A DNA stretch of 64,000 bases, taken from assembly GCA_965153285.1 (NCBI GenBank), contig OZ229112.1; one strand, 5' to 3'. This DNA comes from Podarcis tiliguerta. Its lineage: Eukaryota. A model generated the notes under the pieces. That model worked only from the letters and a program-made list of their open reading frames with translations, had not been told where the DNA came from and did not search any database. This document shows positions 18,558-51,343 of this stretch, piece by piece. Made by a program: the position numbers and the translations under genes. Position 1 is the stretch's first letter. Each line of letters begins with the position of its first letter.

Positions 18558-18599
<42 letters not shown>
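18538..18599. repeat. (TTA)n microsatellite
   Basis: Read directly from the sequence. Confidence 0.95.
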
Positions 18600-20272: not shown

Positions 20273-22183
20273 ATGGAACTGGGGAAAGCGAAGCTGCTGA
20301 GAACAGGCCTTAATGCTTTGCACCAGGCCATACACCCTGTGCATGGGATTGCTTGGACAGATGGCAAGCAGGTGGCACTGACTGGCCTCCACTTTCACAA
20401 CAAAGAACTGCGGTTTGGCGACTCAACGGTTATTGGTCAGTTTGAACACGTCCATGGACTTTACTGGAGCCCGTGTTACTCGGCTGACACGCCAGCCCTG
20501 CTAGCTGTTCAGCATAAGAAGCATGTCAGCGTTTGGCAACTGAGCCACGTTGCCTCGGAAAAGAATAAGCTCCTGGTTTCTCAGACCTGTGAAATTGGCG
20601 AGCCTTTCCAGTTGCTTCCTCAGGGATGTGTGTGGCACCCAAAGAGGGACGTATTGTCTGTCCTTACCAAAAGGGATGCTTCTGTTTTATATACCGTTCG
20701 TTCAGACAACTCCAGGATTAAAGCAGATATCAAAAGCAGTGGTCTCATCCACTGTGCTTGCTGGACTAAGGATGGCCATCGCTTAGTCGTTGCTATAGGC
20801 AGCGCTCTTCACTCCTATATATGGGACGATGCCCAGAAAACATTAAACGCTTGCTCCTTTTGCCCAATATTTGACGTTGGAAGCTACATTTGTGCTATTG
20901 AAGCCACGTTGGATTTTCAAATTGCTGTGGCTACCGAACTCCCCCTTGATAAGATTTGTGGCTTAAATGCAGGCATTACATTTGAATTGCCTGTAGGAAC
21001 GGAAACGGGTTCTTTAACTTCGCAGTCTACACTGGTGCTTGGGGATGAGGAATACTCTATGGATCTGCGAAGGAAGTCTATAGATTCAGACAAATCAGTA
21101 GCCGTTGATTCAGTAGCTTCATCTTCCTCGGGCCCAGTTGATTTAACCCACATCCTTTCAAATCACCGGAGATCTGATCCCAGTCCTCTCATTCCTTTGA
21201 GAAGGAAGGATTACCCTTCAGGAACTGGCCAAGATTCGTCACACTTGATCTTAGTGACTTTTGAAGGAAAGGTAACCACAACCAGGAAAGTCAGCATTCC
21301 AGGAATTTTGGTCCCTGATATAATTGCTTTTGACCTTAGAGCTCAGATTGTGGCAATCGCTTCTAACACTTGTAACATTGTTTTGGTCTACTCAGTCACC
21401 TCATCCTGCATGCCCAACATTCAGCAAATCCAACTAGAGAAAAGCGAACGACCCAAGGGTCTGTCCTTTTTGACAGAGAAGCTCTTACTAGTTCTGATAG
21501 GGAAGCAGAAGTTCACTGACCCCTCACTTATCCCATCATCTAATTCTGATAGATATATCATCCGACTGATGATCAAAGAATTGATATTTGAGGAAGAGCC
21601 ATCAGCAAAATCTGATACCGCCCACAGTCTGCCATTCAGTTTTGAGTCCTCTGTGAACATTCCTGGGAAAAGAAAGTATTTTGAGAATCTTGCTGCCGAG
21701 GATCACATTGTAGGGCGGGAGCTCTTAATCCCAGGCAGAACGATTATTCAGTCACCTAGCGGCAGGAGACGAATGCTGGAAGAAGTGAAGAGCCCTAGTT
21801 ATGAGCAAAGTTCATCATCTAGTGTGAGCGATTTTGATGAGAAAAGAGTCTTAGGTGACCCATCCATTGCACTGGAAACTTTGGATGCAGAACCAATTAA
21901 TCGGTCCGTAGCCCTGTTTGGTCTTGGAACGCCTACCAGGTTTTCCAATAGATCAGTTTCTTCTAAAGCGATGCAAGAAACTTTGAATTCTCCTAAAAAC
22001 AGCAGCTTGGCTAATGAAAAAGGAGCCAGTCAAATATCCAGGAATTTGGAAAAATTGTGTGGCAGCTTCAATGACTTACAGTTGAGACTTCTGGAACTAG
22101 TAGATTTCACAAAAAATGGAAAGAGACTATCTGTAGCTTACCCATCTTCTCAAGAACCACCTTTTGTTCACATCACCTACCAG
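20273..22183 (+). CDS. WDCP: WDCP paralogue A (WDCP-like), large first coding exon: WD40-like N-terminal region plus coiled coil, 637 codons
   Basis: [34 protein letters not shown]...[14 protein letters not shown]...HITYQ matches WDCP/C2orf44. Ends at a phase-0 donor CAG|GTAATT. Confidence 0.95.
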
Positions 22184-23764
22184 GTAATTTATATACCATT
22201 CTCCAAAGTAGTTTGCTCTTAGAAACTTCATTACAGTTCTTAGAAACTTCATTACAGGATTTTGCTTAATTAGTAAGTTTCACATGAGCTTCATGCTGTG
22301 CTTGATTTAAATGGTGAAATGATAGTTATTAGGAGCAAAGGTTATGTCTGATATTCTGCACAGGAAAATCCAGACCTGTGCTTCCTTTACTGTTCAGCTT
22401 AATTGTCATTGATGTATTATATATGTCCATTTGTTCTAAGTCATCTGTTTCCAAATCTTACGGCATATTTTTTTTACTACAAGAGATAACTGGCAGCTCT
22501 ATATGTGGCTTTTGAAATGCTTTGAATCTTTTTAGAGAGAGAAGATATCAGACCAACTTCTGTAGATAAGAATATATAAGCTTCAAAGGATCATGGGTCT
22601 CACAGCATAAAAACATTCAGGAAATATGGGATATTAATATTTGATTACATAATGAAGCAATTTAAGAAAATCAAAATCCATGGATCAAGGTTCCTGTTTC
22701 CTCAACAGCAATTCTTTTCTCCTCCCTTGCTTTTTCATGAAATAATTGTCACTATTTTATTAATTTGATTGCTAGTCAATGTTGTAGTGTTTTGTGGTAC
22801 AACACTAATGGCAACAAAAATGAGTCAATAATTTAGATGTGCTGCATTAAGCAAGCTGGAGCATAAAAACCATTATTTCTATTTCTTTAATAATTCAGAG
22901 TAACTTTCATTAATATATAAAATATAGTGCAGTAGCAAGGCAGATATCTATCTTCCTCCTTCCACTCTTTTCTAAGAAACTTCTGTAGAGTTGCTATTGG
23001 TTTTTTCCTAACAAATTTTATTATTATGAAGCAATAGTTTCTAAAAAAAAAAATCTCTATGATATGAAGCTTGACTCTGTACTCTCTTATTCCGATGACC
23101 CAGGCAGAAAATTGTGGTGTGTTGAGGATTTTGGGGCTGCTTTTTGATTAGAGGTATAGCAGTGGAATTATTTTACGCTTTTTGTTTTGCTGTGAGTTAA
23201 TTTTATCTAAACCAGTACATCCAGAGTGTATATGAGATATTTGCTCTGGGAGCTGCTGCTGCTGCTTTCGCTGCCATTAATCCTTCCAACTCATGGTTGA
23301 CTTTTCAACTACTGTTGTTGCCTTCCTCTTCCTCCTCTTCCATTCCACCCCGCTCCACCCACACAACCACTCCAGGGGTGCATTTTTCAGGGCTGGATAA
23401 AGTCACTTTGCCAGCCTTTAAGCATAGCTGCTTTTAAAGCGGAAGCTACTCATAGAGTTGGGCTCTGTACCTGTCATGGGGGTACCTTATTGCTCCCCCT
23501 CAAAAATATGCAGCTGGGGCCATGCCCCCCGGCTCCCCCCCCCCCCACTATGCCTCTGTTTCCCAGTGAGCAGACTCAGCCTTGCACATAGAAGCCAAAA
23601 ACCCACAAAACTTTTTTGAGGGAGCCAAGCCCCCACAAAGTTGATGGGCATTCCTATTCAAATAGTGTGTTTGTGTGTGCACTGCGTCATGTGATTGATT
23701 ATGTAGAGTGGGGCTTACCTGGGCCCCCACAATATTTTATTTAAGTTGGCACCCCTGACCTTGC

Positions 23765-23854
23765 CATAGCTGTCAACTTTTCTTTTTTCTTGCGAGGAAT
23801 CCTATTCGGAATAAGGGAATTTCCCTTAAGAAAAGGGAAAAGTTGACAGCTATG
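23765..23854. mobile_element. 90-bp hAT-type MITE
   Basis: TIR CATAGCTGTCAACTTTTC. Perfect 8-bp TSD GACCTTGC (23757-23764 and 23855-23862). Confidence 0.9.
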
Positions 23855-25516
23855 GACCTTGCACCTGGGATAGGTATAAGTAGGAACCTAGATACATATG
23901 GCTGGTCTGCACCGATGGCTCTTTGATGCAGATTGCCATGTCAGTAATCTCTAACGTGCTTTCCCCACACTGAGGTGTGGGTTGTCTTTTGGCTCAAGTA
24001 ACTTAAAAATAAATAAATGAATACATAGATGTAGTCTAATACAAATTAATGCTTTGCTGATGGTAAAAAAGGAGAGGCCTTGGGGATCTCTAGGAGTCAT
24101 GGTTGTACAAGACACAGCTGTACAAGTTAGTGGGGATTCCTGAATGGGTCGGATGTGAACAAAATTAATTGTGGAGTATGCCTGATAGTCAAGGAGGAGG
24201 GCTGAAGCAATGGCTGAAATGAAATGAAGGGAACTGCAATAAGTTTTTTCCTCCAATCTAAAATACAGAAGCCTGCAATACAGATAATAATACTTAATGC
24301 TTTTGATGAAGACTTGCAAAGTATGAGAATGCTCATTCATGGTGGGCCATGAATGCAACAGACATGTACTTTTTTTGTATGTAAATAGCAGCCAAGAATC
24401 TTGATTCTGCCTGACACAGTTCAGCAATTTTGTGGGAAGCAATATTGTGGGAGAGAAAGAGCTAAGTTCCTGCTCTCTTCCACTAATGGTCCCAAGCCTA
24501 CTTTGCAGTGGTTGCATATGTTAATTGCCTTCATGAAGTTAACATCCCTTCAAGTTTGGCCCTTAAAAGCAAAATATATAGTGGAAGCATGCTGTTAGTC
24601 CAAATGGACTAGCATGTTCCCACGTGACATTAGACTTCAGTGAGCCCACTACCATGTGCAGCTTCTAAGATGGGTTGCTGTGGAAGGGCTGCGTAGGTGC
24701 CCATTGATGCAGCAAACCAATGTTGCCCACTGCTGACTACCTTGACCCTATTAACCCATTCATCTCACTCCTTGATGGAACCTTGGGCATGCTTTGCAGG
24801 TGGGTGGGGTGGTAGTGCTTGGCTCCAATCCTGCCCCACGTTAACCACACTGCAATGGCTAACCCAAAGGCCCAGGTGAGTGACTAGTGTCAGAAGCATG
24901 AGTTGTCAGGGTCAGGCCATTCAGCAATCAGTTCTTCTGACCAGATATTTTTTTTCTAAGCAGGAACGCACCAGAACTCAGTTCTGGCACCTCTCAGGTG
25001 GGCGACATTGCCATTATAAGAGAACAAGGCACCTCTTTTTCTAGAAAAATAGCACTGCTTCTGACCATGCTGACCCCTTAGGGTAGACCTGCATATACAA
25101 GCAATGGTGCGAATGTGAAACATATATGGCATCTCTTCTATACCATTACTTTGCCTCCCAATGTAACATTCAAGAGTCATTTTACATATTGTGCAGAATG
25201 AGGACGACGATTGGGCTTGTTTACTGCAGGGGAGCATTAAAAAACATAACTTGCCCACTTGCTGTCCAATTTTCTTTCACTTAATTTAAGGTGTACCTTT
25301 ATATTATATGGGAAATCTGTAATTGTGATCTTTTAATTGCAGTCACAAGGGCCCCTGAATCAGATTGGGACTCTTTAAGGTGCGCACACAAAGACACACA
25401 CAGATTTTCTGTTTTCCCAGTTAAAATACAGAAAGAAAGGCGGGGGGAATGCCATTTGCCCTGCAGGACAGGATCTTACACTTACCAGAAATTGTGCTTC
25501 AGCATTCTGCACTAAC

Positions 25517-25880
25517 TCAGGTTTCTGGACCAAACAAGGGAAGTCCCACATAGACTGTATTGCAGTAATCCAGTCTTGAAGTTACCAGTGCCTGATCTAG
25601 CCTGGTCAAGCTATCCTGGTCCAGGAATGGCTGCAGCTGATAAAAGGTGCTTCTAGCCACCAAGACTACCTGATACGAAGCTGCACTGGCCAAAAGCCAG
25701 GGCACATCATTCTATACTAGCTGCAATTTTTGAACCAGACTCAAGGGCAGCCCTACGTAGCATGCATTGCTGTACTGCATTCTAAAGGTTACCAGTGGCT
25801 GCACCACTGTAGCCAAACTATCCCTGTCTAGGAACAAACGTAGCTGGCATACCAGCTGAAGCTGGAAGAAAGCACTCTTT
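25517..25880 (-). mobile_element. L2 LINE fragments (two adjacent pieces)
   Basis: Encodes ALVTSRLDYCNTVYVGLPL, with a second degenerate copy of the same segment next to it. Confidence 0.75.
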
Positions 25881-27509
25881 CACAAATCCAGCATTTCTCC
25901 CATCCTCCAAATAATACCCATCCCCATTATGCAAGGTTCATTACAACTCTTCACCATTTTCCCACTGCTTGACATTCACCTCTAAGGTGACCTGCTGCTA
26001 CCCTAAGTTTCATCTTGAAAGAGCTGCCATCTAGGTAGCTTATGCTCTTCTAGGCTGTAGAAAACGCTGTGCACCTCACAAGGACAGAGACTGCAAACAA
26101 ACTAGGCAATTGTGGCTGGATCTCCTCTCCTATATACCCTCAGAGGGCAATTCCCACTCACGACATTTTGCAGTCTACTTTAGAAATAAAGCAATATTTC
26201 TACAAACATATTCTTTTAACCAAAGCATCTGAATAAAAATAGCTAATTATTTTGTGAAAAATTGTTTCCTACTATCCTCTACGGACCTTAGCAGCCTCCT
26301 CCCCATCTGCAATCCTAGGATAAATAGGCTGGCCTGCCTCGTTCCTGCAATGTTAAGGGTTTTTGAAGCTATGTGTGTAATCACTATATAAATCTTTATT
26401 CTCATCATGCAGTTCAGTTAACATGAAAGTATAGTCCTCTCCCACAACTTGTATCTAAGCCTGAAACATAGGAAGCAACCTATTCAGCATTGGGATATGT
26501 AGCTAAGTGTTTTTTAACTAGAAATATTAATATATAAAAGCAAGAATTTTTGCATATGGAAGGTGAGAAGTTCATACATAGCTTATTATGTGATCCTTGC
26601 ATCATCAGAGGTACATGGTGGTTTGGCACTATTTTGAAAATTCAAATAAAATCCTTTACTTACTTATAGACATGTATAATACAAGATGATAGAAAAGACC
26701 CAGGGGAGGGAATCAGAGGTGAAGCAACCTGCTCCGGTACTGGATCTGAGACCTTCTGCATGCAAAGCATGCCATTCCCAAAGGATGTGGGGAATCAGAA
26801 CTGGACACAAAATGTAGTGCAAACCAGTGCTACTCTAAGTAGTGGTCCGTGGACCGGCACCAGTCCGCAAGCTATTGGCTTCTGGTCCCTGGTGAATACA
26901 CCACAGCCTGGGTGGGATGTTTCAGGGACCAAATATGGTACTGATCCCTGGTACATTGGGGTGGGGTGAATTGCTGGTCCACAACATCAAATAGCTTGAG
27001 AAGCACTGGTGCAAACAACACATGCTAAACACAACAATAAGCACAGAGGTCCAAGCAAAAATTGCAAGCACGCAATTCAGACTGCACGTTATGTTAGCCT
27101 GATTACTGCTTCTTCCTTATAATGGACCCAGCCACAGGGTGGGGTGATCTATAGCAGAGGGGTGCTTAGCTACCCTTGCTGGTGCACCCTCATTTCATGC
27201 TTTGCTGTGTTTTGTAGAGTGCAAGGCTTTTGTTAGGGAAATAAACAAAAATCAGTGTGTGTGATGAATTCATTTAGAAGAAGAAGAAACAGTTGTGGTT
27301 TGGACAAAGTTGACAGAGTTGGGAATAAGTGTGTATGCCATGAGCAACTGAGGGAAATTATTGTAATAATGCATGTCTCTACGTCAGTAAGGAAGAAGAT
27401 ATTTGGTATAAACCGCTATTACAATGTCCTATTTAAGAGACACCGAGGAGCTGAAGACATTTAATGTACAGCATCAAACCCTCTTTTTGCTGGCAAAGTG
27501 ATAATTTGC

Positions 27510-27990
27510 TCCATCAACAGTAAATGAAACAGAATAGGAAGGTAAATTTAGGGAAGCCTGTTAAATGTACACAATAAAGTTGAGAAAGATAAGAAGCAAA
27601 CTTGTGATAAACAGTGAGAGAGTAGAGGACAGAGAGGAAGGAGAGACTGGAGAAGTCAATAAAACTGAGCCAAGGAGCAGGTGAATCATCACAGAGGTCA
27701 TCTTTAATAAATCCACAAACCATTCTTATAATCGGGAAGGCAATTTTGAACTAGATTGAAAACATAAAAGGAGTCGTGAAAACTGATGAAAGATGAGGGC
27801 GATATGGCTCAGCTTTATAGTGTGATAGACTAGTCAGACAGTTTTGAAAGCAAGATTTAAAAAGCCTGTTAAGAAGTGGAAATGCAGTAGTCAAAACAGG
27901 GGATTAATGCTTGGAGGCATTAAAGCCCAAGAGGACGGGGTGAAGAAAGGGCACATTCTAATAACGTTCTGATGAGGCTGAGCACCCACA
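27510..27990 (-). mobile_element. Ancient L2-like fragment
   Basis: Purine-rich decayed sequence with an FDYC remnant of the RLDYCNS motif. Confidence 0.4.
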
Positions 27991-29608
27991 AATAGAAATT
28001 CTGAATGAAAAACAGTACTGTGTATTTCGAAATTAGAAGCACAGACTTCTTACTTCTGTGAAGGTCCTGGTTACTAATTCTATGATGTTCTATAAAAGTT
28101 CCTTCCTCTCTAGCCGGTAACCTGATTAATCATTCAACTAGACTCTCTTCAGGGGATATTAGTGTTCTGTTTGGTAAAGATCCTCATTACTGTGATTTAT
28201 GTGTATGGTGTTAGTAGCTTGCTAACTTTTGCAAATGAGGGAGAGTCTTGTCTTTGAAGCTAAAGAAGTAGAGAGAAACAGGAGAGATCTTTAAAGAATG
28301 TTACAGTGGGTAGATTTGAGGGGGGGGGCAGGAGGGAGCCGAGGGGCCGCCCAGCACAGCTGAGACCTGACACACATGGTGGTGGCACCAGTCATAGTGC
28401 AAGAAACGTGTGGCGAGCCGTTCCAAGGCACCGAAAGGGGTGGGAAGCAAGAGGGTGCTCCACCCCATAAGAGGAAGGCCTGACCAGCTGCCTGCTCTCC
28501 ACGCGCAACCCACAGCCACCCAGGGGCCGTGCATGCTGCACACACTGCGCAATACCAGACCAGAAAAGGGAACCACCTCCCTCCCAGTCTTATGGCACCT
28601 TCGGGACTTCTGCAGCCCAGTTGTGCCTGGGCCAACAGCCCCTGCTGCCCGCCCCCCATGCTACGACTCTGATTATATTTTTGTGCCAAGCATTTTCTGA
28701 CTAGTTATAGTCTTGTCTACTGTATCTGTACATTGCACTTTGTTTAACGTGGTTTGGTTGAATTGTTTCATATTGATATTGTACACTACCATGATATTCT
28801 CTTTTGAAAGAAAAGTGGTATAAAAATATTTTAATAAAAATAATGATAAATTTGCACAGGACATGATAGAAATGACATACTTTTTTGGCAAGTGGTTACT
28901 TTTACTCTTGTTATTCAAGAGGTTATGTTGATATAAAAAGTAAGTGAGGGGAGAAATTTAAGGTGCCACACATAATACCCAGTCCACATTTGTAAGATCA
29001 ACCTTTTAGTGTTGCAGCACTGACACGTTGGAATTTCCATTCATGTTGACATCAGGAGATGCCATCACTGCACTCTTTTTGGTCACTGCTAAGAACATTT
29101 TTGTTTAAACAAGCCTATCCAGATATGCTTATTTGTACTTTTATCTGTTTTCAGTTTGTCGCTGATTTGAATTTCTTTACTTTTTTTAAATAGTTGCTTC
29201 TAACTGTGTGTACTGATAATTTTATTGTTTTATTCTTTTGTAAACTGCTTTGAGGTTTTTTACAGTCAAGCAGTGTATAAATTTTATGAAATAAATAAGA
29301 AAAAAGTGTACTATATAAGAAAACACGGTATTACTGAAATCTAATAGTGGCTCTGGGTGATTGTACTGATGGTATATCAATATATCCTTTGATTGTTCAT
29401 TCCTGATGGCTTGTGCTCCTGATACTATTAGGGCAATCATACATGATCCCGCTGTCAACAGCATTTGCACCAGCAAAGGTTATTTATTTATTTATTTAGA
29501 GCATTTGTGCTCTTTGTCCAAAAAGTCTCCCAGAGCAGCTTACATACAACAAAAACAAGACAGTACCTACCCGCAGGCTTGGGGGAAGGGGGGAAAGCAA
29601 GTGGAAAG

Positions 29609-29857
29609 TAGGGTTGCCATATGTCCAGATTTCCCCAGACATTAGCGGGATTTCAAAGGCGGCATTGACATCCAGGGGAATTTCCGAAAGGCGGAGCTTT
29701 GTCTTGGATCTTAGGCCAATCAATTGAAAAATCATGCGGGTTTTCCAAAAAAACAACAACAAAACAACTCAACAATTTTGGGGTTTTCCTTAAAAAACAA
29801 CCACTCAACAACTTTCAGGGTGTCCTGGTTTTTACTTTTTGAAACATGGCAACCCCA
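29609..29857. mobile_element. hAT-type MITE with TAGGGTTGCCAT termini
   Basis: TIRs TAGGGTTGCCAT / ATGGCAACCCCA. 8-bp TSD GTGGAAAG / GGGGAAAG with one mismatch. Confidence 0.8.
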
Positions 29858-29877
29858 GGGGAAAGGGACAGGGAACA

Positions 29878-30755
29878 GAATTTGCAGATGACACCAAACT
29901 GGGAGGGGTGGCTAACACCCCAGAGGACAGGATCACACTTCAAAACGACCTTGACAGATTAGAGAACTGGGCAAAAAGAAACAAGATGAATTTTAACAGG
30001 GAGAAATGTAAAGTATTGCACTTGGGCAAAAAAAATGAGAGGCACAAATACAAGATGGGTGACACCTGGCTTGAGAGCAGTACATGTGAAAAGGATCTAG
30101 GAGTCTTGGTTGACCACAAACTTGACATGAGCCAACAGTGTGACGCGGCAGCTTAAAAAGCCAATGCAATTCTGGGCTGCATCAATAGGAGTATAGCATC
30201 TAGATCAAGGGAAGTAATAGTGCCACTGTATTCTGCTCTGGTCAGACCTCACCTGGAGTACTGTGTCCAGTTCTGGGCACCACAGTTCAAGAAGGACACT
30301 GACAAACTGGAACGTGTCCAGAGGAGGGCAACCAAAATGGTCAAAGGCCCGGAAACGATGCCTTATGAGGAACGGCTAAGGGAGCTGGGCATGTTTAGCC
30401 TGGAGAAGAGGAGGTTAAGGGGTGATATGATAGCCATGTTCAAATATATACAAGGATGTCACATAGAAGAGGGAGAAAGGTTGTTTTCTGCTGCTCCAGA
30501 GAAGCGGACACGGAGCAATGGATCCAAACTAGAAGAAAGAAGATTCCACCTAAACATTAGGAAGAACTTCCTGACAGTAAGAGCTGTTCGACAGTGGAAT
30601 TTGCTGCCAAGGAGTCTGGTGGAGTCTCCTTCTTTGGAGGTCTTTAAGCAGAGGCTTGACAACCATATGTCAGGAGTGCTCTGATGGTGTTTCCTGCTTG
30701 GCAGGGGATTGGACTCGATGGCCCTTGTGGTCTCTTCCAACTCTATGATTCTATG
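29878..30755 (+). mobile_element. 5'-truncated young CR1 LINE (ORF2 C-terminus plus 3'UTR)
   Basis: FADDTKLGG...LQNDLDRL...[15 protein letters not shown]...LEKRRLRGD in a single frame with one premature TAA (30154-30156). Ends in an (ATTCTATG)n tail. Confidence 0.95.
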
Positions 30756-32602
30756 AGAAGAGGAAAATCAAAATTCAGGCACCCCATTTCAAATACAACC
30801 AACCTCTTTCAATCAGTTGCTTTTGATAACTTATACAACATTTTTGCGTGTTAAGAAAGCCCAAGCTTAATGGGTTTTTCCTCCTCTATAAATGCACAGT
30901 CCATCACATAAGAAAAAATGAGAATCTGTGCCAAGGTAATGGTTATTACCTGTCCCATCCTCTCACAGAAAGTAAAATCTTCAACCATTCATGGTGTCTA
31001 CCTCCCCTTTCCTTTACAATATTTCTATTCAGAATGTATAGTATGTGGTTAAGGTTTCAGTCTGGACTACTAGAAAAGATTTGGATTCTGTTTGCAGAAG
31101 CATAAAGCCAGCTTCTGATGAGGTGGTGAAGCTGTTGGTAAGGGTAACAACATAATGGCATATTCCCACATGAAAAACTAGCATGCAATGAAGGATAGGC
31201 TTTTGATCTCAGGTTCCTTCCCTATGTACACAACATTTATTGTACAAAGGAGCATTCAACCACGCAAGACCCTACCTGCTTATGAAATAGTGTAAACCAG
31301 AAACAGATTTACCACATTTTCCTGCTGTTTGTGAGAACTAGACCACTGTGGTGCTGTATACTGTACATCAGAAAACACAAATATAAAAATGGCCTTTAAC
31401 TAAAAGAAAATGCACATAAGAGGAGGGTGCTTATAGGATTTTGCATGGTGCTCAGGTGCACATTGATGTAGCAAAACTACCTAAGACGCTGACAGAGCAA
31501 GTGAACCTGAGAAGAAACCAGCATCTGCGCACTAAAGGAGATTAGGAGACATTTATTTGTACTGAAGGTTAATTAAGATGAGGAACAGATTACTAAAAAC
31601 AGAAACAGAAGATGCAGCTGTGAGTCTGCTGAAAGAGAATGTTGGTATAAGTTTTCAGTATCAGAATGGAAACACTGCAGAATGAGATCTATATTACTTT
31701 GATGGTCCTGATTATTTTCCCGTTAAAATGCCTGTGACACTGCATTTTATTTCTTGTTTAATATCTGGAGGACTAAATAGGATGTTGATGTGATTTACGG
31801 ATGGTGCTAAATTGAGAAGTGTTGCAAACAAATACCAATTACTTAGTGGTGAGAGAATAGGATGAGCCCTGGATTGGTTAGGAAGTAATGGAGTGAACTC
31901 CAAACAGTGTGATCCTCAGCACTTTTACTGAGAATCATAGCATGTTGACTGGGGACTACCTTGTTATTTAATGCTGAAGCCAAAATGAGTAAAGAAAAGG
32001 GGGGGGGGAGATTTAATAACAAAACCAGTCTCTTTATTTCCAAGCAGGAATGTGTGGAGTGTTAGGGAAGGGGAAGTACTTCTGGTGGGGAATAGGTCAT
32101 GCTACTTCTGGAGTAGTTTATCCACCCTGCACTCAGCTCTCACCTGTGGCTCCTGGAAGCTGTCAGTATGCAACAGTGGCAACACCGCAGAAATTACTTT
32201 GTCTGGCTAAACCAGGTGAGGGTAGCCAATGGGTCTTAAACCCTCCACGCTACTGGTCCAGAACATCACTACATTTACACACATGCTCTTGAAGTCACCA
32301 TCTCTAGCCTGAGATGACTGAGCCAGCAGCATTCAGAGACTCACAACAACATCTGAGTGATCCTAGCAGGGTTGTAGCCCCATACTTTGGGAAATCCTGA
32401 ACCTTTCTTTTTTTTAAAAAAGAAGTCTCTTATAAACAAGTTGTTTTTGTGCTGTCCCCACCCCTTACTTTTGGGCATGTGAAAATATAGAAAGCAGAAT
32501 TCATGAAAATTGCTGATTCATAGGGCTAATTAACAATAATTAATGTAAATGTGACCAATATTCTAACAAGATGTTTATCCCTATATGTTTATGTGCCTGA
32601 AG

Positions 32603-32723
32603 AAGCATTTTTCAAACGGAGCTATAGCTGAAGAAACAAGAACTGTTCTCCTGTGTGATGGCAAGGTTCATCTGAATTTAGTCCAACGACTTTTTGATCT
32701 GCCTATTGTTGAAATGAAACATG
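32603..32723 (+). CDS. WDCP: WDCP paralogue A, middle coding exon (K)HFSNGAIAEETRTVLLCDGKVHLNLVQRLFDLPIVEMKH-G
   Basis: Homologous to the copy B middle exon. Donor ATG|GTAAGT. Tandem AAG/AAG acceptor, so the start is 32603 or 32606. Confidence 0.92.
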
Positions 32724-34794
32724 GTAAGTTCTCTATTACTATAATAATAATAATTTTATTATTTATACCCCACCCGACTGGGTTGCCCCAGCCAGTCTCT
32801 CTCTCTCTCTTTTAAAAAATGCAAGTGTTTATTATAGTAGGTAGTACTTTTGGGGAACATAAGTTGTGCTATTAAGGGATTGTTTACATGTACATCCTCC
32901 AATGTGATGGAAGTTTAACTGAGTTCTATTCCCTTTCCTGGCAAGCTTATTCTCCTGAGTGCATCTCAACACTTGCCTGACACTGATCAAGCCCTACTCA
33001 GTTGGTTCACAGGTATCATGACCTATATCTACAATAGATGGTCAGTTTAATCCTCATGCTTTTTCAGCAGAATGTTGTTTCTACCATTGATAGGGACCTT
33101 CTTGTTTTGTCTCAATGTCTGTCCTTAGTCATATATTAGTTGACTATGTCCAGAAATATGCTACATATTAGTAGGCTTCCCTTCTTGCAGCAGAGCACCC
33201 AATCAAGCTACTAATTCTCACCTGGGTCTAATGTCATGTAGCATAAATGGGGAAGTTGAATATTTAGCATGATTGTTCAGCAATCCCATAACCAAAGCAG
33301 GCTGGTTGCTGCCTTTGCTTACTGGATTAAGTAAGTCGAAAAACAAAACTTATAGGAAAGATTTCCTAACAGGTTTGCTGACAATTGAATGCCTTTCTCT
33401 ATCAGAGACAGACACCATAAACTCAGTGATACTTAACAGGTGTATCAAATTGTTATGCTCTGGATTAGTTTAATCTACGCTGAGAACAGAAGGAGCTCAC
33501 CAACATAATCTTCCAAACTCCCACCTTTGATTTACTTGTGAAGGTAGGGAGCAGTCAGGAAAGAAAAGATCTTTATACACAGCTTCTTTGTTCATGCCTC
33601 TATGTATTCAATGATTTAACAACTTCAGCCGCAGCTCAACCATTTTCAGCCTATAATGTTTTCTGCAAGTAGCTTTACCATATACTGTAAATATATACAC
33701 AATATATTGAGGACACAGGGATTGTCCACACTTTTGCTTGTTCCATACCTAGAATGGGTCTGAGCGGTTTTCTACTTGCCCCATGCTTTCTAGCACGGGT
33801 CCAAGCAGTTTTGCCTTTGCACCACCACTTTCCCCCAGAAAACCCACTGTTTAGCATTAAATTGGAACAAATGGCAATTCACAGATAAATTTATAGCTGT
33901 TTGTTCCAAATCAGCACTAAAGATCGCGAAAGAGGTGGGGCAAATGGAGGTGTGGAAAACCCATGAGCACAGCGGGGGGGGGGCAGCTGCTCCCCAATCA
34001 AGTAAATAAATAAGAATACTTGACTGACCAACTGTGTCGCAAATAACTCAGTCCTGCACCCCCCTAAAATAAATCCTGGCTATGCCAATGGATAACCCCC
34101 AAGAGAGAAAAGACAGAAAGAGGAGAAAGTGTAACTAAATGGTAGGGCATATATGAAGAGGTTCACATCACTAGTTTTTGCTACATCCTTTATTTATTTA
34201 GTGTACTCAAGAGATACAGTAAAATTACCCACTCTCAGAGGAACCTGCCCTTTCTGTCTTGGAATGAGTAGTTGCTCTTGGCTTACCTCCAATGAAGTCA
34301 CGAAGCATCATGCTTACAATAGTAATAAGCATTGGACAAAAACATTCTCTCAGGCGTTTGGCTAATTATACAACCTATGTGGCCTTTTAAACTGTGTGTG
34401 GGTTTTTTGTTTTGTTTGTTACTATGTTATGTATTTTCGTGTTTTTATATCACAAACCAACCTGCGATCCTCAATGGGCAGTATAGAAATCTAATTAATA
34501 ATAATAATAATAACTTGAAGGGAAACATAGGGGCAGACACTTTTAAGATTAGGTAACTTTTGAGTGTTTTCATAGCTTTGCTTTTTGAATGCAAGTGAGA
34601 GTCCAACTTTAATTAAGAAAAAATGTATATCTTTAGGACACACTGCCACAGTCCCATACAAAACACAATGTGAAGTTGAACACATTGCTTTGAATGTAGA
34701 ATTTTAATTCATTAAGGAAAACTGTTCTTTCCTCCTTTTTAAAGAGTTATGTGAGCACTTAATCACCCATACTTTCATATACTATGGCTTAGAT

Positions 34795-37317: not shown

Positions 37318-37484
37318 GTTCTTCTTGGATTGTTCTTACTGCAGATGGTGAAGGTTTTATCCCATTAACATTTAAGGCAAAGCAAGAGATCATCATAAGG
37401 GAGGGGAGTGATAGTTTGGAAGCCTGTGGAAGTCACTCCTTCAAAAGAAACATTTCTTCGCAACCACCGAGCAGCGTGACATAA
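37318..37484 (+). CDS. WDCP: WDCP paralogue A, last coding exon (G)[29 protein letters not shown]...SSVT*
   Basis: Strong polypyrimidine tract plus TAG acceptor, phase 1 compatible. Contains the conserved [16 protein letters not shown] motif and ends in TAA. Confidence 0.93.
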
Positions 37485-40879: not shown

Positions 40880-41960
40880 TTCTACGAAGCGGTCGGGTTA
40901 GACTCACAGCAACCTTACGCGCTAGGACGGAGACTAGCGGCCTGCGCCCATGTGCATATAAAGTCCAAGACTCGCCCCCCGACCCAGAAACGTGGGAACT
41001 GTGGTGTGTTAAAATGTTGGGAACTGTAGCTCTGGAAGGGGATGAACTATAGCTTCTGACATTCTTGGTGGTGGTGTTTGGTGCTTGTGGGCAACCCCAG
41101 CCTGACGCGCTTCGTGGCCGAATGGGCGTTTGAGGCAGGCTCTTTCAAGCCGTGGTCGCCTGTGAAGGAAAACGGCTTAACGCCCGTATATATATATGTA
41201 TGCATATGGACCTAATGGTCAGGGGTCCCTTTACCTTTATATGTATGTGAGTATACACACAGAGCACTTGTTTTTATTGTCAGGCACATAAAATGTATTG
41301 AGAAGCTTACGAGCCCCTAATGAACAAACCGGGGAAGGTTGCCTCATAACGGCCAACTGAAGCCCCGAGGACGAGGCGGGACCAGCGCGTCTCCTGGCCC
41401 CGCCTCTCTGTCAGAAATGCTCCTCACGAACCGCACGCGCCGCCTGCCACCCAACCGCATAGGAGAAGCTTAAGCCACGTGAGCGAGGCCTCAAAAAAAA
41501 AGGGGGGGAGGGGAAAGCAGCTCCCTTGTCGCGAGAGGGCGTTTGTTAGATCATAGAGAGACCCGTTGGTGGTAAGTAGAGCGCCGTCGACTGAGGAGCG
41601 TAGACAAGGGGAGCTGACGCGAGGCGCCGGCTTAAGGCCCCGCCCCTTTTTCCTCCTACTGCCACCACCGAAGGCCAGCCAGCGCCCCTTGTGGCGGCTC
41701 GGGAGCCGAGCAGCTCCTCCTCCTCCGCTCGCGAACTAACAGGAATGAACAGAGCGCCGAGCGGGTGCGAGAAGAGGCCGATGTCGTTATCCCGATTGGC
41801 GACCGAACCGCGTCCCCTTATAAGGTAAGAGCCTCCCGCGGCGGGGGCGGGCAGGTAGGCGGGGGCGATGGAGGAGGAGGAGGGGGCGGGGCCAACGGCC
41901 TGAGGGAAAAACCCCGAGGCGCTGCGGTGGGTGTGTAACACGATTTAGGCCGCAGTCCAA
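40880..41960 (+). promoter_or_regulatory. CpG-island promoter and non-coding first exon(s) of WDCP copy B
   Basis: CpG-rich. Contains E-box CACGTG (~41476), TCGCGAGA (41529-41536), inverted CCAAT (GATTGG ~41794) and GC boxes. Two good donors: GTG|GTAAGT (41571/41572) and AAG|GTAAGA (41824/41825). Confidence 0.8.
41207..41237 (+). mobile_element. Extreme 3' stub of a Sauria SINE
   Basis: GGACCTAATGGTCAGGGGTCCCTTTACCTTT is identical to the 3' end of the 49391 copy. Flanked by a TATATGTATG repeat. Confidence 0.75.
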
Positions 41961-42039
41961 TACGCCTGCATGGTGTGAGTCCCGTTGAACTTCAGTTTAA
42001 AGAAAAGCAAACCCACGGGGACAGTTCTCCTTTCATGGG

Positions 42040-42790
42040 ATCGGAAGGGATCCTGAGGATCATCTAGTCCAACCCCCTGCAATGCAGGAATAAGGCAGCG
42101 CCGGTCCCATACGGGGCTCGAACCTGCGACCTTGGGGTTATCGGCATAGCTGTCAACTTTCAGATTTGAAAATAAGGGATCAGCAGCCTTGAAAATAAGG
42201 GATCAGCAGCCTCACCTGTCCCGGGGAGCCTCGAAAATATGGGATCAGCAGGCTCAACTGTCCCAAGGACAGTCTACGGGATATCTAACAATCTGGGATA
42301 GCAGCGGGAAGCAGCGGGCAACGGTGCTGGAATAAGGGAATTCCCCGCAAAAAGGGAAGGTTGACAGCTATGGTTATCGGCAGCCCGCTCCAAACCAACT
42401 GGAGCTGTGAGTCACAGAACAGTCCTCAGTCTAGGCCTTGGGGGCCCTTCGCAATACGGTTTGTATAAAATCGTAGAATTTTGGAGTCGGAAGGAACCCC
42501 TGAGGGCCATCTAGTCCAACCCCCTTCAATGCAGGAATCTGTCGACGCGGGGCTCAAACCCACAACCCTGAGATGAAGGGTCTCGTGCTGTACCTGACTA
42601 GGCTACTATCACGCTGGAAGAGAGATTTCTGCTCTCATGCAGCAGAGTTAAGCGCGACTGCGGTTGCTCCAATCGCATTAAAAATGTCACATTGGAAGGG
42701 ACCCCATCTGGTCCACATTTTGCTCAGTGTGGGGGGCTTGAATCTGCAACCCTGAGATTTAAGAGTCTTACGCTCTGCCAGCTAAACTAG
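42040..42790 (-). mobile_element. Cluster of three tRNA/CR1-tail SINE copies; the first is interrupted by a hAT MITE
   Basis: Copies at ~42040-42405, ~42474-42610 and a head at ~42725-42790. Shared segments ATCTAGTCCAACCCC..GCAATGCAGGAAT and CAACCCTGAGAT..AAG.GTCT. Confidence 0.75.
42145..42372. mobile_element. 228-bp hAT-type MITE, same family as 23765
   Basis: TIR CATAGCTGTCAAC. 8-bp TSD GTTATCGG (42137-42144 and 42373-42380). Internal AATAAGGGATCAGCAG repeats. Confidence 0.9.
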
Positions 42791-43986: not shown

Positions 43987-44939
43987 ACACCCCAAGCAGT
44001 AGGGCTGATTATTTTTCAGTGTGATGGTAAACTTAGTACAAAGTGCCCCCTCCTCTCCTCAGCTTCTTATATTTGCCTTATGCAAGGCAGATTTGGGTTT
44101 GACACAAAGTATACACTTGGCAGGGAGCTGCTACCAATCCTGACTGTGGTGAGAGTACCTGTCTGACATAGATGTCAGAAAACACATCCCATCCCATCCC
44201 AAATAATTATGGGTACCGTAGTTTTGTCAAGAGTTGCTGGGATTTGTACCTCTGAGGGATGACCTACAGTACCCAGAATTCTTTTGAATGTGTTTCAAAT
44301 AGGCTTTAAAGCTTTAAAGCTCTAAGGTATACAACCTTAGAGATAAAAATGGGTAATGTGAGAAGAACATCCATATTCTAGCATTTGTTAAAGTTGTTAT
44401 TGTCTATTACAGTATTGTAACAAAATAATATAAATACTTTTTTTAAAATGCAAATAATACCTACTGATACATGGGCCCCTATATTCTCGGCCTTTGTTAT
44501 TTTAACCCATGTGCAACTATACTCATTCCATGGGCCTATTTTATAGTTTTGTCTTTCATCTTTTTATTTTTTTATTCATTGTTCTTTCTTTTATTATATA
44601 CATTGTAAAATGAAATTTAAAAAACTCTGGAAAAAAGATACATGAACCTCAGTTGTATACCGTGTTTACTTTACTCCCCTTTTTGCTTATTGTCTCAAAT
44701 CACTAAATATTTTTTTAAAAAAAGATGAATGCTAGAAGAAAACAAGAAGCCTTGATGGATCAAGGCAGAGATTCATCCAGCATGCTCTTTTCAACAGTGA
44801 GCCCCAAAATGTTCCTGGGAATTTACTTTTTGTATTTGCGTCATTATATGGCATAAAGACAAATTAGCAACAGCAAAAATGTTTCAAATAATGTTTTTTG
44901 TTTGCTTGCTTTATAGATGTATTCCTTCAGAACATAAAA

Positions 44940-46835
44940 ATGGAGTTGGGGAAAGGAAAATTGCTGAGAACTGGCCTCAATGCCTTATACCAGGCCATAC
45001 ATCCTGTGCATGGGATTGCTTGGACTGATGGAAAGCAAGTGATCCTGACTTCGTTGTATCAGCATAATGGAGAACCTAAATTTGGCAACTCGAATGTTGT
45101 TGGCCAGTTTGAACACGTTCACGGGCTTTACTGGGCTCCATCTTGTGCCCCAGATCTCCCTGCACTCCTTGCTATCCAGCATAAAAAACACATCACCATG
45201 TGGCAGCTGTGTTACAGTGTTTCTGAAAGAAACAAACTGATGGTTTATCAAATCAGCGAAATTGGCGAGCTGTTTCCCATCCTTCCTCAGGGGTGTGTGT
45301 GGCATCCGACAAAGGAAATCTTGGCTGTGCTTACTACGCGGGACACCTCTGTGCTACACTCGGTCCGGATCAACAACTCCAGAATAAAAGCAGATATTAA
45401 AAGCAGTGCGCTCATCCACTGTGCTTGCTGGACTGAGGAAGGCAACCGCTTGGTGGTTGGGATAGGCAGTGCCCTCCATTCCTATATTTGGGATGATGAA
45501 CAGAAAACTTTGAATGCCTGCTCTTTTTGCCCGATATTTGACGTGGGAGGCTACATCTGTGCAATCGAAGCGACATTAGGTTCTCAAGTGGCGGTTGCTA
45601 CCGAACTTCCACTAGATAAGATATGTAGCTTAAACGCGGGCATTTCATTTGAAATGCCATCTGAGGCTGTCGGAAACACTGTTCCCTCACAAACTTCCTT
45701 GTCAACCTGCAAAGAAGAGCTCTCAGTAGACAGTGGGAAAAAGTTAACAGACCAAGAAAAACCTGGGTCCATTGTAACTTCTACATCTTCGTCGGTGGAT
45801 CTAACCCACCTCACTGCAAGCAAGCAGCAGACTGATAACAATTCTCTCCTTCATCTAAGAACTAAGGATTACTTAACAGGAAGCGGCCAAGATGCCTCAC
45901 ACCTGATCTTGGTGACTTTTGAAAGAAAAGTGACAGCTACCAAAAAAGTCAGCATCTCAGGGATTCTGGTCCCAGACATAATGACTTTTGATTCTAAAAC
46001 TCAAACTGTGGCAGTGGCGTCCAACACTTGTAATATAATTTTGGCTTACTCTTTATCTTCATCTCACTTGCCTAACATTCAACAAATTCAACTGGAGAAA
46101 AGCGAAAGGCCAAAGGGATTGTGTTTCCTGACAGAAAAGCTATTGCTGATACTGGTTGGAAAACAGAAATTAACAGACCCGGCTTTTCTTCCATCGTCAC
46201 GCTCGGACAAGTACATTCTCCGTTTGATGGTCAAAGAAATTGTGTGCAAAGAAGACTCTACTGCCTTTTCGGGGACTACCCAGGTTTGCTTTGCAAACGT
46301 ACCGGTAAAAAAAGAGGGCATAGAAATTCATTCTTCAGAGCCTCATGTACTGTGTGATGGATTGCTGATGCCAGGTTGCACAGCGATCCAGTCTCCGAGA
46401 AACAGAAGAAAACTCATAGAAGAAATTAAGAGCCCTGCTAATGAGCAAAGCGTGCTGACCAATGCAGTTGACTTCCAGGAGAAAAAGATTTCCAGGGACT
46501 TCCCTCAAGTCCTGGGAAGTTTGGATGCTGAACCAACAAATCGTTCACTTGTTCTTCAAGGAATCGAAACCTCTTCAGGATTGTCAAACGTATCCATTTC
46601 ACCAAACAAGCATGTGCATAGTTCTATGGATATGTCAAATTCCTCAAAAACAAACTTGCTGCAAATTGAAAAAGAACCCTCTTACACCTCTAAGCATCTG
46701 GAAAGGCTGTGCTGCAGGTTTGCAGAATTGCAGCATCAGCTTTTTGAACTAACCGAGCTTTTGAAATCGGGGAAAAAACCTCTGCTGGGATATCCATCTT
46801 CGCGTTCTCCCTCTTTTGTTAACATCACTTATCAG
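44940..46835 (+). CDS. WDCP: WDCP paralogue B, large first coding exon, 632 codons
   Basis: [22 protein letters not shown]...NITYQ. Preceded by a long polypyrimidine tract with acceptors at 44916/44917 or 44930/44931. Phase-0 donor CAG|GTACCT. Confidence 0.95.
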
Positions 46836-47544
46836 GTACCTTTCAAACACAAAGTACATGTATTCATGTGCTTTATTGTTACCAGCTAGGCTTAAAAATA
46901 CTAGAAATCTTGCTTCCTATCTCTGGAGAGAAGCAACTTTTGTATAGCAGCATGGGCTAACACAAACTCACTGAAGGGAGGCAAACAAATTTACTGTCCA
47001 CAACTAGCTGTGTGACACTAAGAGCATCTAGGGATGGGAGCCTGTGGCCTTCCAGACATTGCTGGACTACAACTCCCATCATCCCTGGCTATTGGCTATG
47101 CTGCCTGGGGCTGATGAGGTTTGGGAGTGCAACAGATCTGGAGGGCCACATCCATAGAGCAACAGCTGGGAAGGAGACCTCTGGAAATTCTCCACTGGGC
47201 TTTCATCAGTTGAAACTGCTTGGAATTCTCGTGTGCACAAACAATGCATATCTGTTGCACTGGCCTGCAGATTCTTGAATGCAGTCCCAGACTCTGGGCA
47301 TCTGTTTGATTTTGGCAAGTGCTGTCCAATTTGAGTGCTTCTGCTAATTACCTGTAAAGGGCAAATTAGCAAAGAGGTGGCCTGGATATAGTTTCCCCAT
47401 TCCTGGGCCAAGCAAGTGATCAGCACAGGCTGAGCTGGAACATTCAGCAAATTTAGATGCATGCAGATCAGATTTGTTGCAAGGTGCCTGGGAATGGGGT
47501 GAAATAAGTCTTGATCACGCTAGTAGTTTGTTCTTAATTTACAG

Positions 47545-47662
47545 AAGGATTGTTCCGGAACTGTTACACCTGAGAAGCGAGCTGTTATCCTCTGCGATGG
47601 CAAACTTCGTCTAAGTCTAATTCAGCAGATTTTCAACCTGACTCTTGTTGAAATGCAGCATG
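47545..47662 (+). CDS. WDCP: WDCP paralogue B, 118-nt middle exon [40 protein letters not shown]
   Basis: TTTACAG acceptor and ATG|GTAAGT donor. [14 protein letters not shown] is a WDCP motif. Too short to appear in the ORF track. Confidence 0.94.
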
Positions 47663-47984
47663 GTAAGTTCTGTTTGTCAGAAATATGGTATTTAGTGAAA
47701 ATATTTGATTGATGTGGAAGGAAGGCAGTGTGCCAGTGGGAAAACAGTTGTACCTTTTATTGTGTGTGTTACATTTGGTCTAATTTAGAATTCAGAAACG
47801 GAAGTTGCTTTACATTTTTGTTTATAAGAGGCGAAGGTGCCAAGAGCCCTTTATTTTCAGCTAGGGTTTGTGCTTATTAGAAGACCATTTGGGAAATCAG
47901 AGAAGGAATACTGATTTCTTCTGCATAACTTGTACCTTCTGTGTCATTTCTCACAATATCACCTATGCTTTAGAGTAATGTTTA

Positions 47985-48225
47985 CAGTTATACCTTGGGT
48001 TACAGACGTTTCAGGTTGCGTTTTTTCGGGTTATGGATGCGCCAAAACCCGGAAGTAACCCGGAAGTACCGGAACAGGTTACTTCTGGGTTTTGGCGGTC
48101 GCGCATGCGCAGAAGCACCGAATCGCAACCCGTGCGTGTGCAGACGTGCCACTGTGGGTTGCGGACGCTGCGGGTTGTGAATGTGCATCCCGCACGGATC
48201 ACGTTCGCAACCCACGAGTCCACTG
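47985..48225. mobile_element. Tc1/mariner (Tigger-like) MITE, CpG-rich and palindromic
   Basis: CAGT...ACTG ends, TA TSD and internal inverted repeats. Confidence 0.8.
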
Positions 48226-49390
48226 TATTTCAGTAGCAAGTGTAGAGATATTTCTGAGCATTAGCTCTGCTTTTCCTCATAGGGAATTTCGTTTTGATTA
48301 CCCTTTTCCAGCTCTACAGTATCCTTTTTGAGGTGACCAGAATTATACTCAGCATCCCAAGTACAGTTGCCTAATTGCAGACATTTTACAAGTTAACAGC
48401 ACTATCAAGGCCCAGTAAAAAAACAGAGTGTGCCCAATTTAGCAACACCCCGTTCCATACCCAGTGGCTTCAGCATGCTTCATTTGTTGCAAGCTGCTGC
48501 AAGAACTCCCAAATGGCATTTGGAATAATTTAAGAAAATTCTTGCTATCAATAGTGATTTTCAGATTGATTCCCCTTGCTCAATTATGAAAGTAAATCTT
48601 ATAAATTGCGACTTGCCCTAATTTTCCTTGCACAATTTCAGGGTGGGTTATTAACACGTCTACAATGTGTTACATATGCTGGCTTGTTTAACTGTGCCCG
48701 CAGAGATATTTTGAAAGTCTTGTGCGGTATTGGCCTTAAGTTGAGTTCAGATAAAGCATTAAGCAGAAAGATTAAAAGTTCACATGACTGTAAAGCCTCA
48801 ATCTTCTCATGATGTCACTTGCCGCAGAGTGTTACATAACCGACAAATGGAGCTGCCAGTAAGAATTGCATTTCTAGCAGTTCCTAAAATTACGGGTAGT
48901 GAATGACGTCGCCGTGTCGATATAAAATTTGAGAAGTACTGCATGACTGCTAAAAGCTGACTACACCTGTAATCCAGGAACAGTTTTACAGTTTGGAACC
49001 AAGTTCCTTTGGAAAGGCTGCTTCACGAGGTGCCGGCACAACTAGACATTTGGACCTGCCAGTTTTCGCCCTGAATGTGCTGCAGTCCTTTCAGGAGAAG
49101 GTGGTTTGGGAAAGCTGTTTGCTGCCCTTCCTGACACCTTTTACAATAATGCCCCCCTTGCATGTCTGCGAGTCTGCCTCCCTGTTTCTCCTGAACTGCT
49201 TTGCCGATGCTGGTATTATTCTATCCATGCCCTACCCCAACTCAAGCTGGCATGTACTGTCTGGTTTTACTCCCCTTCCCTATTTTACCTCCTGCATTTT
49301 AAGCCTGTGACCTGAAAAAAGCAAGCCTCCAGATGCCTCTTTAATAATAATAATAATGATGATGATGATATATTATTATTTATACCCTAA

Positions 49391-49740
49391 GGGATGCCGG
49401 TGGCGCTGTGGGTTAAACCACAGAGCCTAGGACTTGCCGATCAGAAGGTCAGCGGTTTGAATCCCCACAGCGGGGTGAGCTCCCGTTGCTCGGTCCCTGC
49501 TCCTGCCCACCTAGCAGTTCAGAAGCACGTCAAAGTGCAAGTAGATAAAAAGGTACCGCCCCGGCGGGAAGGTAAACGGTGTTTCCGTGTGCTGCTCTGG
49601 TTCGCCAGAAGCGGCTTAGTCATGCTGGCCACATGACCCGGAAGCTGTATGCTGGCTCCCTCGGCCAATAAAGCGAGATGAGCACTGCAACTCCAGAGTC
49701 GGCCACGACTGGACCTAATGGTCAGGGGTCCCTTTACCTT
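49391..49740 (+). mobile_element. Sauria SINE, full length, in the last intron of WDCP copy B
   Basis: Complete head and tail. TSD TATTTATACCCT at 49377-49388 and 49741-49752. Confidence 0.92.
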
Positions 49741-51047
49741 TATTTATACCCTGCCATCTGGGGTATAAATACTTTGGAATGGCGTTGGGGGAAATGGCTG
49801 CTTTTACCTGCTTTAGGAAAGCAGAGGCATGCCAAATGCTCTTAGTTCTATCAAGGCTAAGATCATCTCCACAGTGTTTCCATGCACATTCCAGGAAGAA
49901 CACCCTCCACAATCTTTAGGCAGCTCACTAACATTGCTGTATCAATGGGCTGAAACTGAGATGAAAGGGAGGAGGGTCCTGAATGGTGCAGCTAGGTAGA
50001 TATAGACCTTGGGCTTAACAGTCATTACACACACACACACACACAGATACCCTCCACCATTTCATTCTTTACTTCCAACATTCCTGCTGTGTTGGAAGAA
50101 GGGGGGGGGGAGAGAACCCCAAACCAAAAGCAGTTTGGTTATCCTGATTTTTTTCAGAGAAAAATACTCTTGAGCATCTGCAGCACTGCATTTTCAGACT
50201 TCGCAAAATTGTAGTGCCATCAGGACTACAAGAAAAAAAAATGGGAGCTTGCTTCTGCTGCTCAACAAGAAACATCTGAAGTCATTGGCAGCCAAGCTAC
50301 AGAACAGAATTGTGGCCTTGCTTGACAACAGGAGGGACCCTGGCTAAAGCATAGAATCCAACCTTTGCTGCTGCTTAATTCTCCAGTACTGAGGTGCTGC
50401 ATGCTTCTCTGTTCACTGGGCTACAAGCTGAACCAAGACATGGATGGCTGTCAGAGTGGAGTAGTCACCCCCAATTTCTGTTTGGTTTGGTTTGCTAATA
50501 CTATTCCTTCCCTTGGGAGTGTTCATGTCTTACTAAGCTTGTGCCAGCCATTCAGAGAGTTTAATCACTGTATTGAAATACCACCATTTTCAATGTACAA
50601 GGTAGAAGCTGCAATGCAAGAATTGTTTGAATTAAATGCTTCCAGCCAAGAATTGCCCAAGTGTCACTTTGATACAGTCTCATTTTAAAAGTTGTCTGTG
50701 ACTTAGAAGTCATGTCAAGATGTATTTCTTGCTGCTTTCTGTGTACGTAAAAATTAATCTAACATTGCTAGCTAGAAGCAGGACTTCCAGCTTGGTCCCA
50801 TGACCATGGATGCCCGGGCCTGTGGGTGCCCTTCATGGGGAATTTTGTGGGTGCTCGGTTACCCAGGGCCCTGGAGAGTTGGCACCTATGGCTAGAAGTG
50901 TATTACACTGTTGGGTCTGATACCGTTAATCTAAATTCTGAATTTAGGCCAGCCAGCTACTGTCATTTTATATCGCAAACTGTAACAAAGATCACAGTTT
51001 TTCTATTATGCTCTTGAAAAATTGTATGTATCTAATGTCTTCAACAG

Positions 51048-51343
51048 GTTTGTCCTGGATTGTGCTCACTTCAGACAACGAAGGTTTTATTCCATTAACA
51101 TTTGATGCCCTGCAGGAGATAGTCATAAGGGATGCCCACTCTAGTGATATTGCCAGCTGTAACGATAGCAGCACTGATTCTTCCAAAACACTGAAAACTA
51201 TCAGTTCCACAGGTGATGGATACAGGAAGATTTCCTCCCAAAGCTTGGATCGTGATAACAGTTCTATGGAAGTAATGGGAGAACATTCTTCCCAGTGTCT
51301 GGTACAGAGTAATTCTTCAGGCCACACCAGTACGGCTTCATAA
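51048..51343 (+). CDS. WDCP: WDCP paralogue B, last coding exon (G)[28 protein letters not shown]...HTSTAS*
   Basis: CAACAG acceptor, phase 1, conserved EGFIPLTF motif, Ser-rich tail, TAA stop. Confidence 0.94.

Follow-up and report, generated by a model that had tools for sequence, protein, structure and literature searches.

A 64,000-nt stretch of the genome of the lizard Podarcis tiliguerta (NCBI GenBank assembly GCA_965153285.1, contig OZ229112.1; hereafter the window, meaning this stretch at its full length) contains two complete genes of the WDCP family, arranged in tandem on the plus strand and designated here copy A (20273-37484) and copy B (44940-51343). The scaffold protein WDCP has been little studied, and most of what is known of it concerns its fusion to ALK in colorectal cancer and its association with the RUVBL1/2-RPAP3 chaperone machinery; human WDCP is also reported to bind the kinase Hck. 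The pair is best explained as two functional tandem paralogues derived from a duplication on the amniote stem, with the WDCP of therian mammals descending from the B lineage, a reading to which we assign a probability of roughly 0.75.

The gene models were obtained by mapping the Podarcis muralis proteins back onto the window and then reading the splice junctions, with frame and length computed by script (Table 1). The list of open reading frames (ORFs) of the window includes two long ORFs on the plus strand, at 20273-22222 and 44898-46889, which correspond to the first coding exons of the two genes. Each gene is composed of three coding exons, with a product of 732 aa for copy A and 769 aa for copy B; all four introns are GT-AG, the first intron of each copy is in phase 0 and the second in phase 1, and neither copy has an internal stop. 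Intron lengths are 10,419 and 4,594 bp in copy A and 709 and 3,385 bp in copy B, and the greater length of the first intron in copy A (10.4 kb vs 0.7 kb) is due in part to an apparent remnant of a long interspersed nuclear element (LINE). A preliminary description, made from the letters of the window, had listed two complete genes on the same strand with three coding exons each, intron phases 0 and 1, and no stops; all of its numbers were reproduced, including last exons of 55 and 98 aa and the sizes of the introns, which were matched by the script-built models. A perfect 32-bp tandem duplication is also observed at 37090-37154, ~165 bp upstream of the last exon of copy A.

Table 1. Positions of the WDCP exons and of other features in the window
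Feature	Positions	Strand	Description
FKBP1B-like exon 2 GRTFPKKGQTCVVHYTG	11726..11794	-	Weak FKBP_C match, E 0.048 over 23 aa
FKBP1B-like exon 1, coding part MGVEVETITPGDG	14538..14576 (approximate)	-	Within CpG island 14400-15000; head-to-head with copy A
Copy A coding exon 1	20273..22183	+	637 aa; ATG to phase-0 donor CAG/GTAATT; 99% identity to P. muralis WDCP P0001
LINE reverse-transcriptase fragment in copy A intron 1	29839..30684	+	Two adjacent ORFs; RVT_1 E 2e-4, below gathering score
Copy A coding exon 2	32603..32723	+	121 nt; AG acceptor, phase-1 donor; spacer of 15 aa (the ancestral length) separating QK from LCDGK
Copy A last coding exon	37318..37484	+	55 aa + TAA; ancestral short tail ...PPSSVT-stop
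CpG island 2.5-4 kb upstream of copy B ATG exon	40900..42400		GC 0.53-0.63; CpG observed/expected 0.65-0.94
Copy B ATG exon, coding part	44940..46835	+	632 aa; phase-0 donor CAG/GTACCT; 98% identity to P. muralis WDCP-like X1 P0121
Copy B coding exon 2	47545..47662	+	118 nt, one codon shorter than in copy A; spacer of 14 aa, a length shared with wombat and bats
Copy B last coding exon	51048..51343	+	98 aa + TAA; C-terminal extension rich in serine, confined to B-type and bat proteins
MFSD2-like transporter, two 3' exons	58940-59086 and 56889-57104	-	Tail-to-tail with copy B

Protein family, domain plan and constraint

Both genes encode full members of the Pfam family WDCP (PF15390), with scores of 1043.4 bits for copy A and 958.9 bits for copy B against a gathering cut-off of 25.3. 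Residues 2-638 of the exon-1 products span profile positions 1-629 and 1-634 of 694, and these products share 59% identity. The domain plan was taken from the AlphaFold2 (AF2) model of the P. muralis orthologue of copy A (P0001), and the architecture of copy B was read from the pattern of conservation between the copies. In the P0001 model, residues 1-228 and 321-440 are beta-rich, with predicted local distance difference test (pLDDT) values of about 85-93 and a disordered loop in between; these are followed by a disordered linker (441-582), a helix (581-615), and, at 627-710, a small C-terminal domain that is modelled with confidence. A Foldseek search with this model returned only generic seven-bladed WD40 propellers, the best of which were Sqt1, Bub3, CIAO1 and WDR4 with E-values of ~1e-7 to 1e-8.

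The copy A orthologue is predicted by this model to have an N-terminal WD-type beta-propeller assembled from residues 1-228 and 321-440. The long helix at ~581-615 would be the coiled coil, and it is followed by the small conserved C-terminal domain encoded by exons 2-3, and the sequence of exons 2-3 shows conservation from shark to lizard in both copies. Copy B probably forms the same beta-propeller, given its 72-76% identity to copy A in the propeller blocks, and the conserved and variable blocks between the two copies track the domain plan of the model exactly. By analogy, both lizard proteins may function as scaffolds, as reported for human WDCP: RUVBL1/2 promotes the association of a listed set of proteins, WDCP among them, with the C-terminal domain of RPAP3 (PMC13153604).

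The two copies were compared over 615 aligned codons, with the codons over 46008-46044 masked. The proportion of synonymous differences (pS) is 0.71, which is saturated, and that of nonsynonymous differences (pN) is 0.23, with omega about 0.12 overall; omega falls to 0.03-0.08 in the two propeller blocks and lies at 0.2-0.27 in the linkers. Amino acid identity follows the same division, at 76% over residues 1-240, 72% over residues 321-440, and 36-40% in the linkers, in keeping with the preliminary description of conserved WD-like blocks carrying many synonymous differences and joined by diverged linkers. No tract of low pS was found in any 40-codon window of the comparison, so recent gene conversion between copies A and B was rejected.

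Purifying selection on both copies, as had been proposed, is supported indirectly by the overall omega, by the intact ORFs kept in both the A-type and the B-type clade across all sauropsid lineages, and by lizard-turtle identities of ~84% for copy A and ~70% for copy B. Copy A evolves at about half the rate of copy B: in the gene tree described below, the A and B lineages have accumulated 0.30 and 0.56 substitutions/site from the amniote node, and 0.26 and 0.68 on the lineage leading to the window itself. The difference extends to the most recent branch, where copy A matches the P. muralis protein named WDCP (P0001) at 728/732 residues (4 differ) and copy B matches the protein named WDCP-like isoform X1 (P0121) at 752/769 residues (17 differ), so that copy B is the faster of the two there too.

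The greater number of recent differences in copy B is also the observation that speaks for a rival explanation, in which one copy is an assembly artefact or a recently dead or silent gene. The low identity of the exon-1 products and the saturated synonymous sites show that the copies are not haplotypes of one locus, and an assembly artefact was rejected on these grounds, in agreement with the preliminary description; both copies are, moreover, annotated in dozens of species. Nor do the genes look dead, since all ORFs and splice sites are intact and both copies are conserved across sauropsids. In addition, full-length B-type proteins of 749-760 aa (P0152, P0155) are encoded on Logan contigs that measure just 2.6-2.7 kb; such contigs can hold next to no intron sequence and most likely represent spliced RNA, in this case from other sauropsids. 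An artefactual, dead or silent copy is the least credible of the explanations considered here, and we regard it as highly improbable. A search of sequencing runs returned raw-read bulk RNA-seq under the label of a related species, and small runs that are only guessed to be RNA, which contain 9-18% of the sequence words of copy A exon 1.

Age of the duplication

Sauropsid matches to the two genes fall into two distinct protein sets, an A-type of ~730-736 aa and a B-type of ~750-770 aa, which are often encoded on one contig; each type has annotated representatives among lizards, snakes, tuatara, turtles, crocodilians and birds. A maximum-likelihood (ML) tree was calculated from 54 rows under LG+C20 by posterior mean site frequencies (PMSF) and rooted with shark and ray. 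A lamprey root was tried and dropped, because long-branch attraction pulled the echidna protein to the root. The backbone of the tree corresponds to the species tree, with ray-finned fishes, coelacanth and lungfish positioned outside the tetrapods, and support is 91/94 for amniotes, 100/100 for sauropsid A, and 100/99 for sauropsid B. The A and B clades each hold lepidosaurs, turtles, crocodilians and birds. Because the proteins of the two types fall into separate, fully supported clades across sauropsids, the duplication predates crown sauropsids, and the preliminary claim of an old duplication is upheld; a grouping of A with B within lizards, the check that had been set beforehand, was not seen in the tree.

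Copy A of the window belongs to the sauropsid A clade (100/100) and has both the ancestral stop (...PPSSVT-stop) and the 15-aa exon-2 spacer. In length (~730 aa), in this spacer, and in the alanine at residue 6, it resembles the single-copy WDCP proteins of fish, lungfish, coelacanth and salamander, and it is 63-66% identical to those of sturgeon, coelacanth and bichir; the end of its short tail resembles that of the slow frog copy described below (...PSSSVT-stop). Unlike the single-copy proteins, copy A is one of two, and it has acquired exon-2 changes of its own, with GKVHLN replacing GKLRLS and LFDLP replacing IFNLS.

Frogs also have two WDCP genes on one contig (P0317/P0339, P0318/P0340, P0323/P0336, P0333/P0352, P0315/P0355 and P0331/P0341), one conservative and one fast, with 0.49 and 1.10 substitutions/site from the frog node. 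This likeness to the lizard pair is the argument for a single duplication on the tetrapod stem common to frogs and amniotes, with gene conversion or model error mimicking a frog-only pair. The frog copies, however, form one frog-only clade (98/91) that stands apart from amniote A and B, so the frog duplication is independent; only one WDCP copy was seen in each of two newts; and no trace of conversion between A and B is present in the window. A shared tetrapod-stem duplication is thus very improbable, though somewhat less so than an artefactual or dead copy. Among fishes, milkfish (Chanos chanos) has two WDCP proteins on different contigs (P0232 and P0353), one of which is very long-branched (1.13 substitutions/site), a situation that may be left over from the teleost genome duplication.

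The reading that we prefer places the tandem duplication after the split from lungfish and before crown sauropsids, most probably on the amniote stem before therians and sauropsids diverged. Copy A would be the conservative member, having kept the ancestral stop and the ancestral length of exon 2. Copy B would have lost one codon of exon 2, gained a serine-rich C-terminal extension (...SxSLDxxxSLEVxR.....SLD...), and acquired its own upstream CpG island.

Descent of mammalian WDCP

Mammals are represented in the tree and in the profile comparisons by wombat, bats and echidna. In the ML tree under LG+C20, wombat and bat together are sister to sauropsid B (99/93). Comparison of the A profile with the B profile by hhalign gives scores of 1636/1496 for the newt control, a lean to A of 140, whereas wombat scores 1296/1438 (a lean to B of 142) and bat 1243/1295 (a lean to B of 52). 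The length of the exon-2 spacer divides the proteins in a similar manner: it is 15 aa in 77/77 A-type proteins, in all fish, in newts and in echidna, and 14 aa in 46/46 B-type proteins, in wombat and in bats. Residue 6 is alanine in fish, newts and the A clade, and glycine in B, wombat and bat.

The C-termini provide a further character. Copy B, but not copy A, continues beyond the ancestral stop with an extension in which the motif SLD...SLEV.R.....SLD is present in diverged form. This extension (...SESLDITSSLEVLREHSSKSLDT...) aligns without gaps to the tails of the long isoforms of two bats, with z of 6-7.5 and a score that 0/3000 shuffles reached, and in a scan of all proteins fetched by then, full-tail B-type proteins scored 81-183, bats 52-55, and the rest <=42. 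The 3' flank of copy A shows no similarity to the extension in any of the three frames, and the possibility that the copy B tail represents read-through of sequence still visible in the copy A 3' untranslated region was accordingly rejected. The four Molossus isoforms (P0305, P0230, P0307, P0308) diverge directly after ...IIIRDGGSS(R), from which the placental B-type tail seems to lie on a separate, alternatively spliced exon. The lizard and bat genes would differ in this respect, as the lizard B extension is read through one last exon and the bat isoforms point to an additional splice following ...GGSSR.

Copy B shares with therian WDCP (C2orf44, PF15390) a full-length family match, FKBP-type and MFS_2 flanking genes, the 14-aa spacer, glycine at residue 6, and the extension motif as found in the bat long isoforms, and its identity to the therian proteins is 48-57%. 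In the reading that we favour, marsupial and placental WDCP would descend from the B lineage, and A would have been lost in therians. A duplication before the therian-sauropsid split with therian loss of A is well favoured by these data, at least as strongly as the explanation of the pair as a whole.

Several observations weigh against this descent. When sauropsid A and B are constrained to one clade with mammals outside, the log-likelihood (lnL) falls by 11.4, and the approximately unbiased (AU) test does not reject that topology (p 0.117). Mammals and B are both long, fast branches, so that part of the support for joining them could come from long-branch attraction. Counts of strict site patterns give 4 sites for B+mammal, 1 for A+mammal and 0 for A+B, which are too few to decide, and the indel scan returned no informative indels besides the exon-2 codon and the tail. 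In frogs and rodents the exon-2 spacer is prone to indels, and glycine at residue 6 has also arisen in the frog Ascaphus. The remaining points come from the echidna (Tachyglossus aculeatus) protein P0228, named WDCP-like, which is the sole monotreme protein compared. P0228 retains the ancestral short tail, which stops at the same point as in A and in the slow frog copy (z 4.3 vs turtle A). Its spacer is 15 aa long, and its exon 2 shares RTV and HL residues with A; P0228 also scores higher with A than with B, both by BLASTP (758 vs 697 bits) and by hhalign (1363 vs 1292). Its tail, its spacer and its higher A scores fit poorly with a single mammalian gene of B type.

These observations are the basis of the rival in which the duplication occurred on the sauropsid stem after mammals had split off, with the grouping of mammals and B produced by long-branch attraction and parallel change. 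The AU result, the long branches of B and mammals, the ancestral tail and spacer of echidna together with its outgroup-like lean to A, and the small number and conservative nature of the shared single-residue states would all be accommodated by such a history. It is, however, the topology that is worse by 11.4 lnL units, and it has to contend with the 99/93 support for therians plus B under a site-heterogeneous model and with the higher scores of wombat and bat on the fast B profile, even though the newt outgroup leans to A by 140. It would also require the same one-codon deletion and the same tail extension of 28-34 residues to have arisen twice, or copy A to have regained the ancestral stop and length. 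A duplication confined to the sauropsid stem is therefore unlikely, though it is the strongest of the competing accounts of the pair. The proposal, raised for human WDCP in the preliminary description, that B is the therian-like copy and that mammals lost A is thus favoured by the tree, the profiles, the spacer, the tail and the glycine at residue 6, and it stays unproven in view of the AU result and the ancestral states of echidna.

The position of echidna itself can be read in two ways. In the ML tree P0228 falls on the B side, below therians plus B (88/74), and its lean to A by hhalign is smaller than that of the newt outgroup. The AU test does not reject the alternative that joins echidna to A (delta lnL 3.9, p 0.112). 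It is conceivable, though doubtful, that the only annotated WDCP of echidna descends from the A lineage while therians kept B, which would amount to hidden paralogy under one gene name; in that case A would have been lost in the therian stem and not in the mammalian stem.

Flanking genes, promoters and meaning of the pair

The order of genes in the window is FKBP1B(-), WDCP-A(+), WDCP-B(+) and MFSD2-like(-). The two exons of the MFSD2-like gene match positions 337-381 and 382-427 of the 427 positions of the MFS_2 profile (PF13347), with E-values of 7.6e-07 and 2.6e-05. The CpG island upstream of copy B is likely to contain its promoter and a first non-coding exon; a polypyrimidine tract and AG lie directly upstream of the copy B ATG and point to a probable 5' exon without coding sequence. 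Tandem units of 23/42 bp are found at 42166-42264, within this island. The CpG scan of the window revealed no island adjoining the ATG exon of copy A (20273), and from the sequence, copy A would start either from the FKBP1B CpG island ~5 kb away or from a promoter without a CpG island. A (TAT)20 microsatellite is present at 18541-18599, upstream of copy A. The pair may have been kept by a division of labour, with different promoters (an island of its own for B and none nearby for A) and different C-termini.

The two genes are named inconsistently in the databases. In birds and alligator the B-type protein is called WDCP and the A-type WDCP-like, and in lizards the names are reversed. Literature searches found no paper describing WDCP paralogues. 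The preliminary description had called the pair evidence of a functionally uncharacterised second WDCP; the second copy is a real gene, but it was not new to the databases, as RefSeq already names a WDCP-like. Both genes have RefSeq models and belong to a known family, the pair represents no new type of system, and the novelty lies only in the evolutionary reading.

If that reading is correct, the human gene would be the faster, tail-extended member of an old pair, and the copy nearest to the ancestral vertebrate protein would survive only in reptiles, birds and possibly monotremes. This would bear on the assignment of orthology, given the swapped names, and on the use of chicken and lizard genes as models for human WDCP. 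The two copies would also constitute a natural experiment on the roles of the C-terminal extension and of a separate promoter, and the independent duplication in frogs, with the same asymmetry between a slow and a fast copy, hints at a repeatable route to splitting the roles of WDCP.

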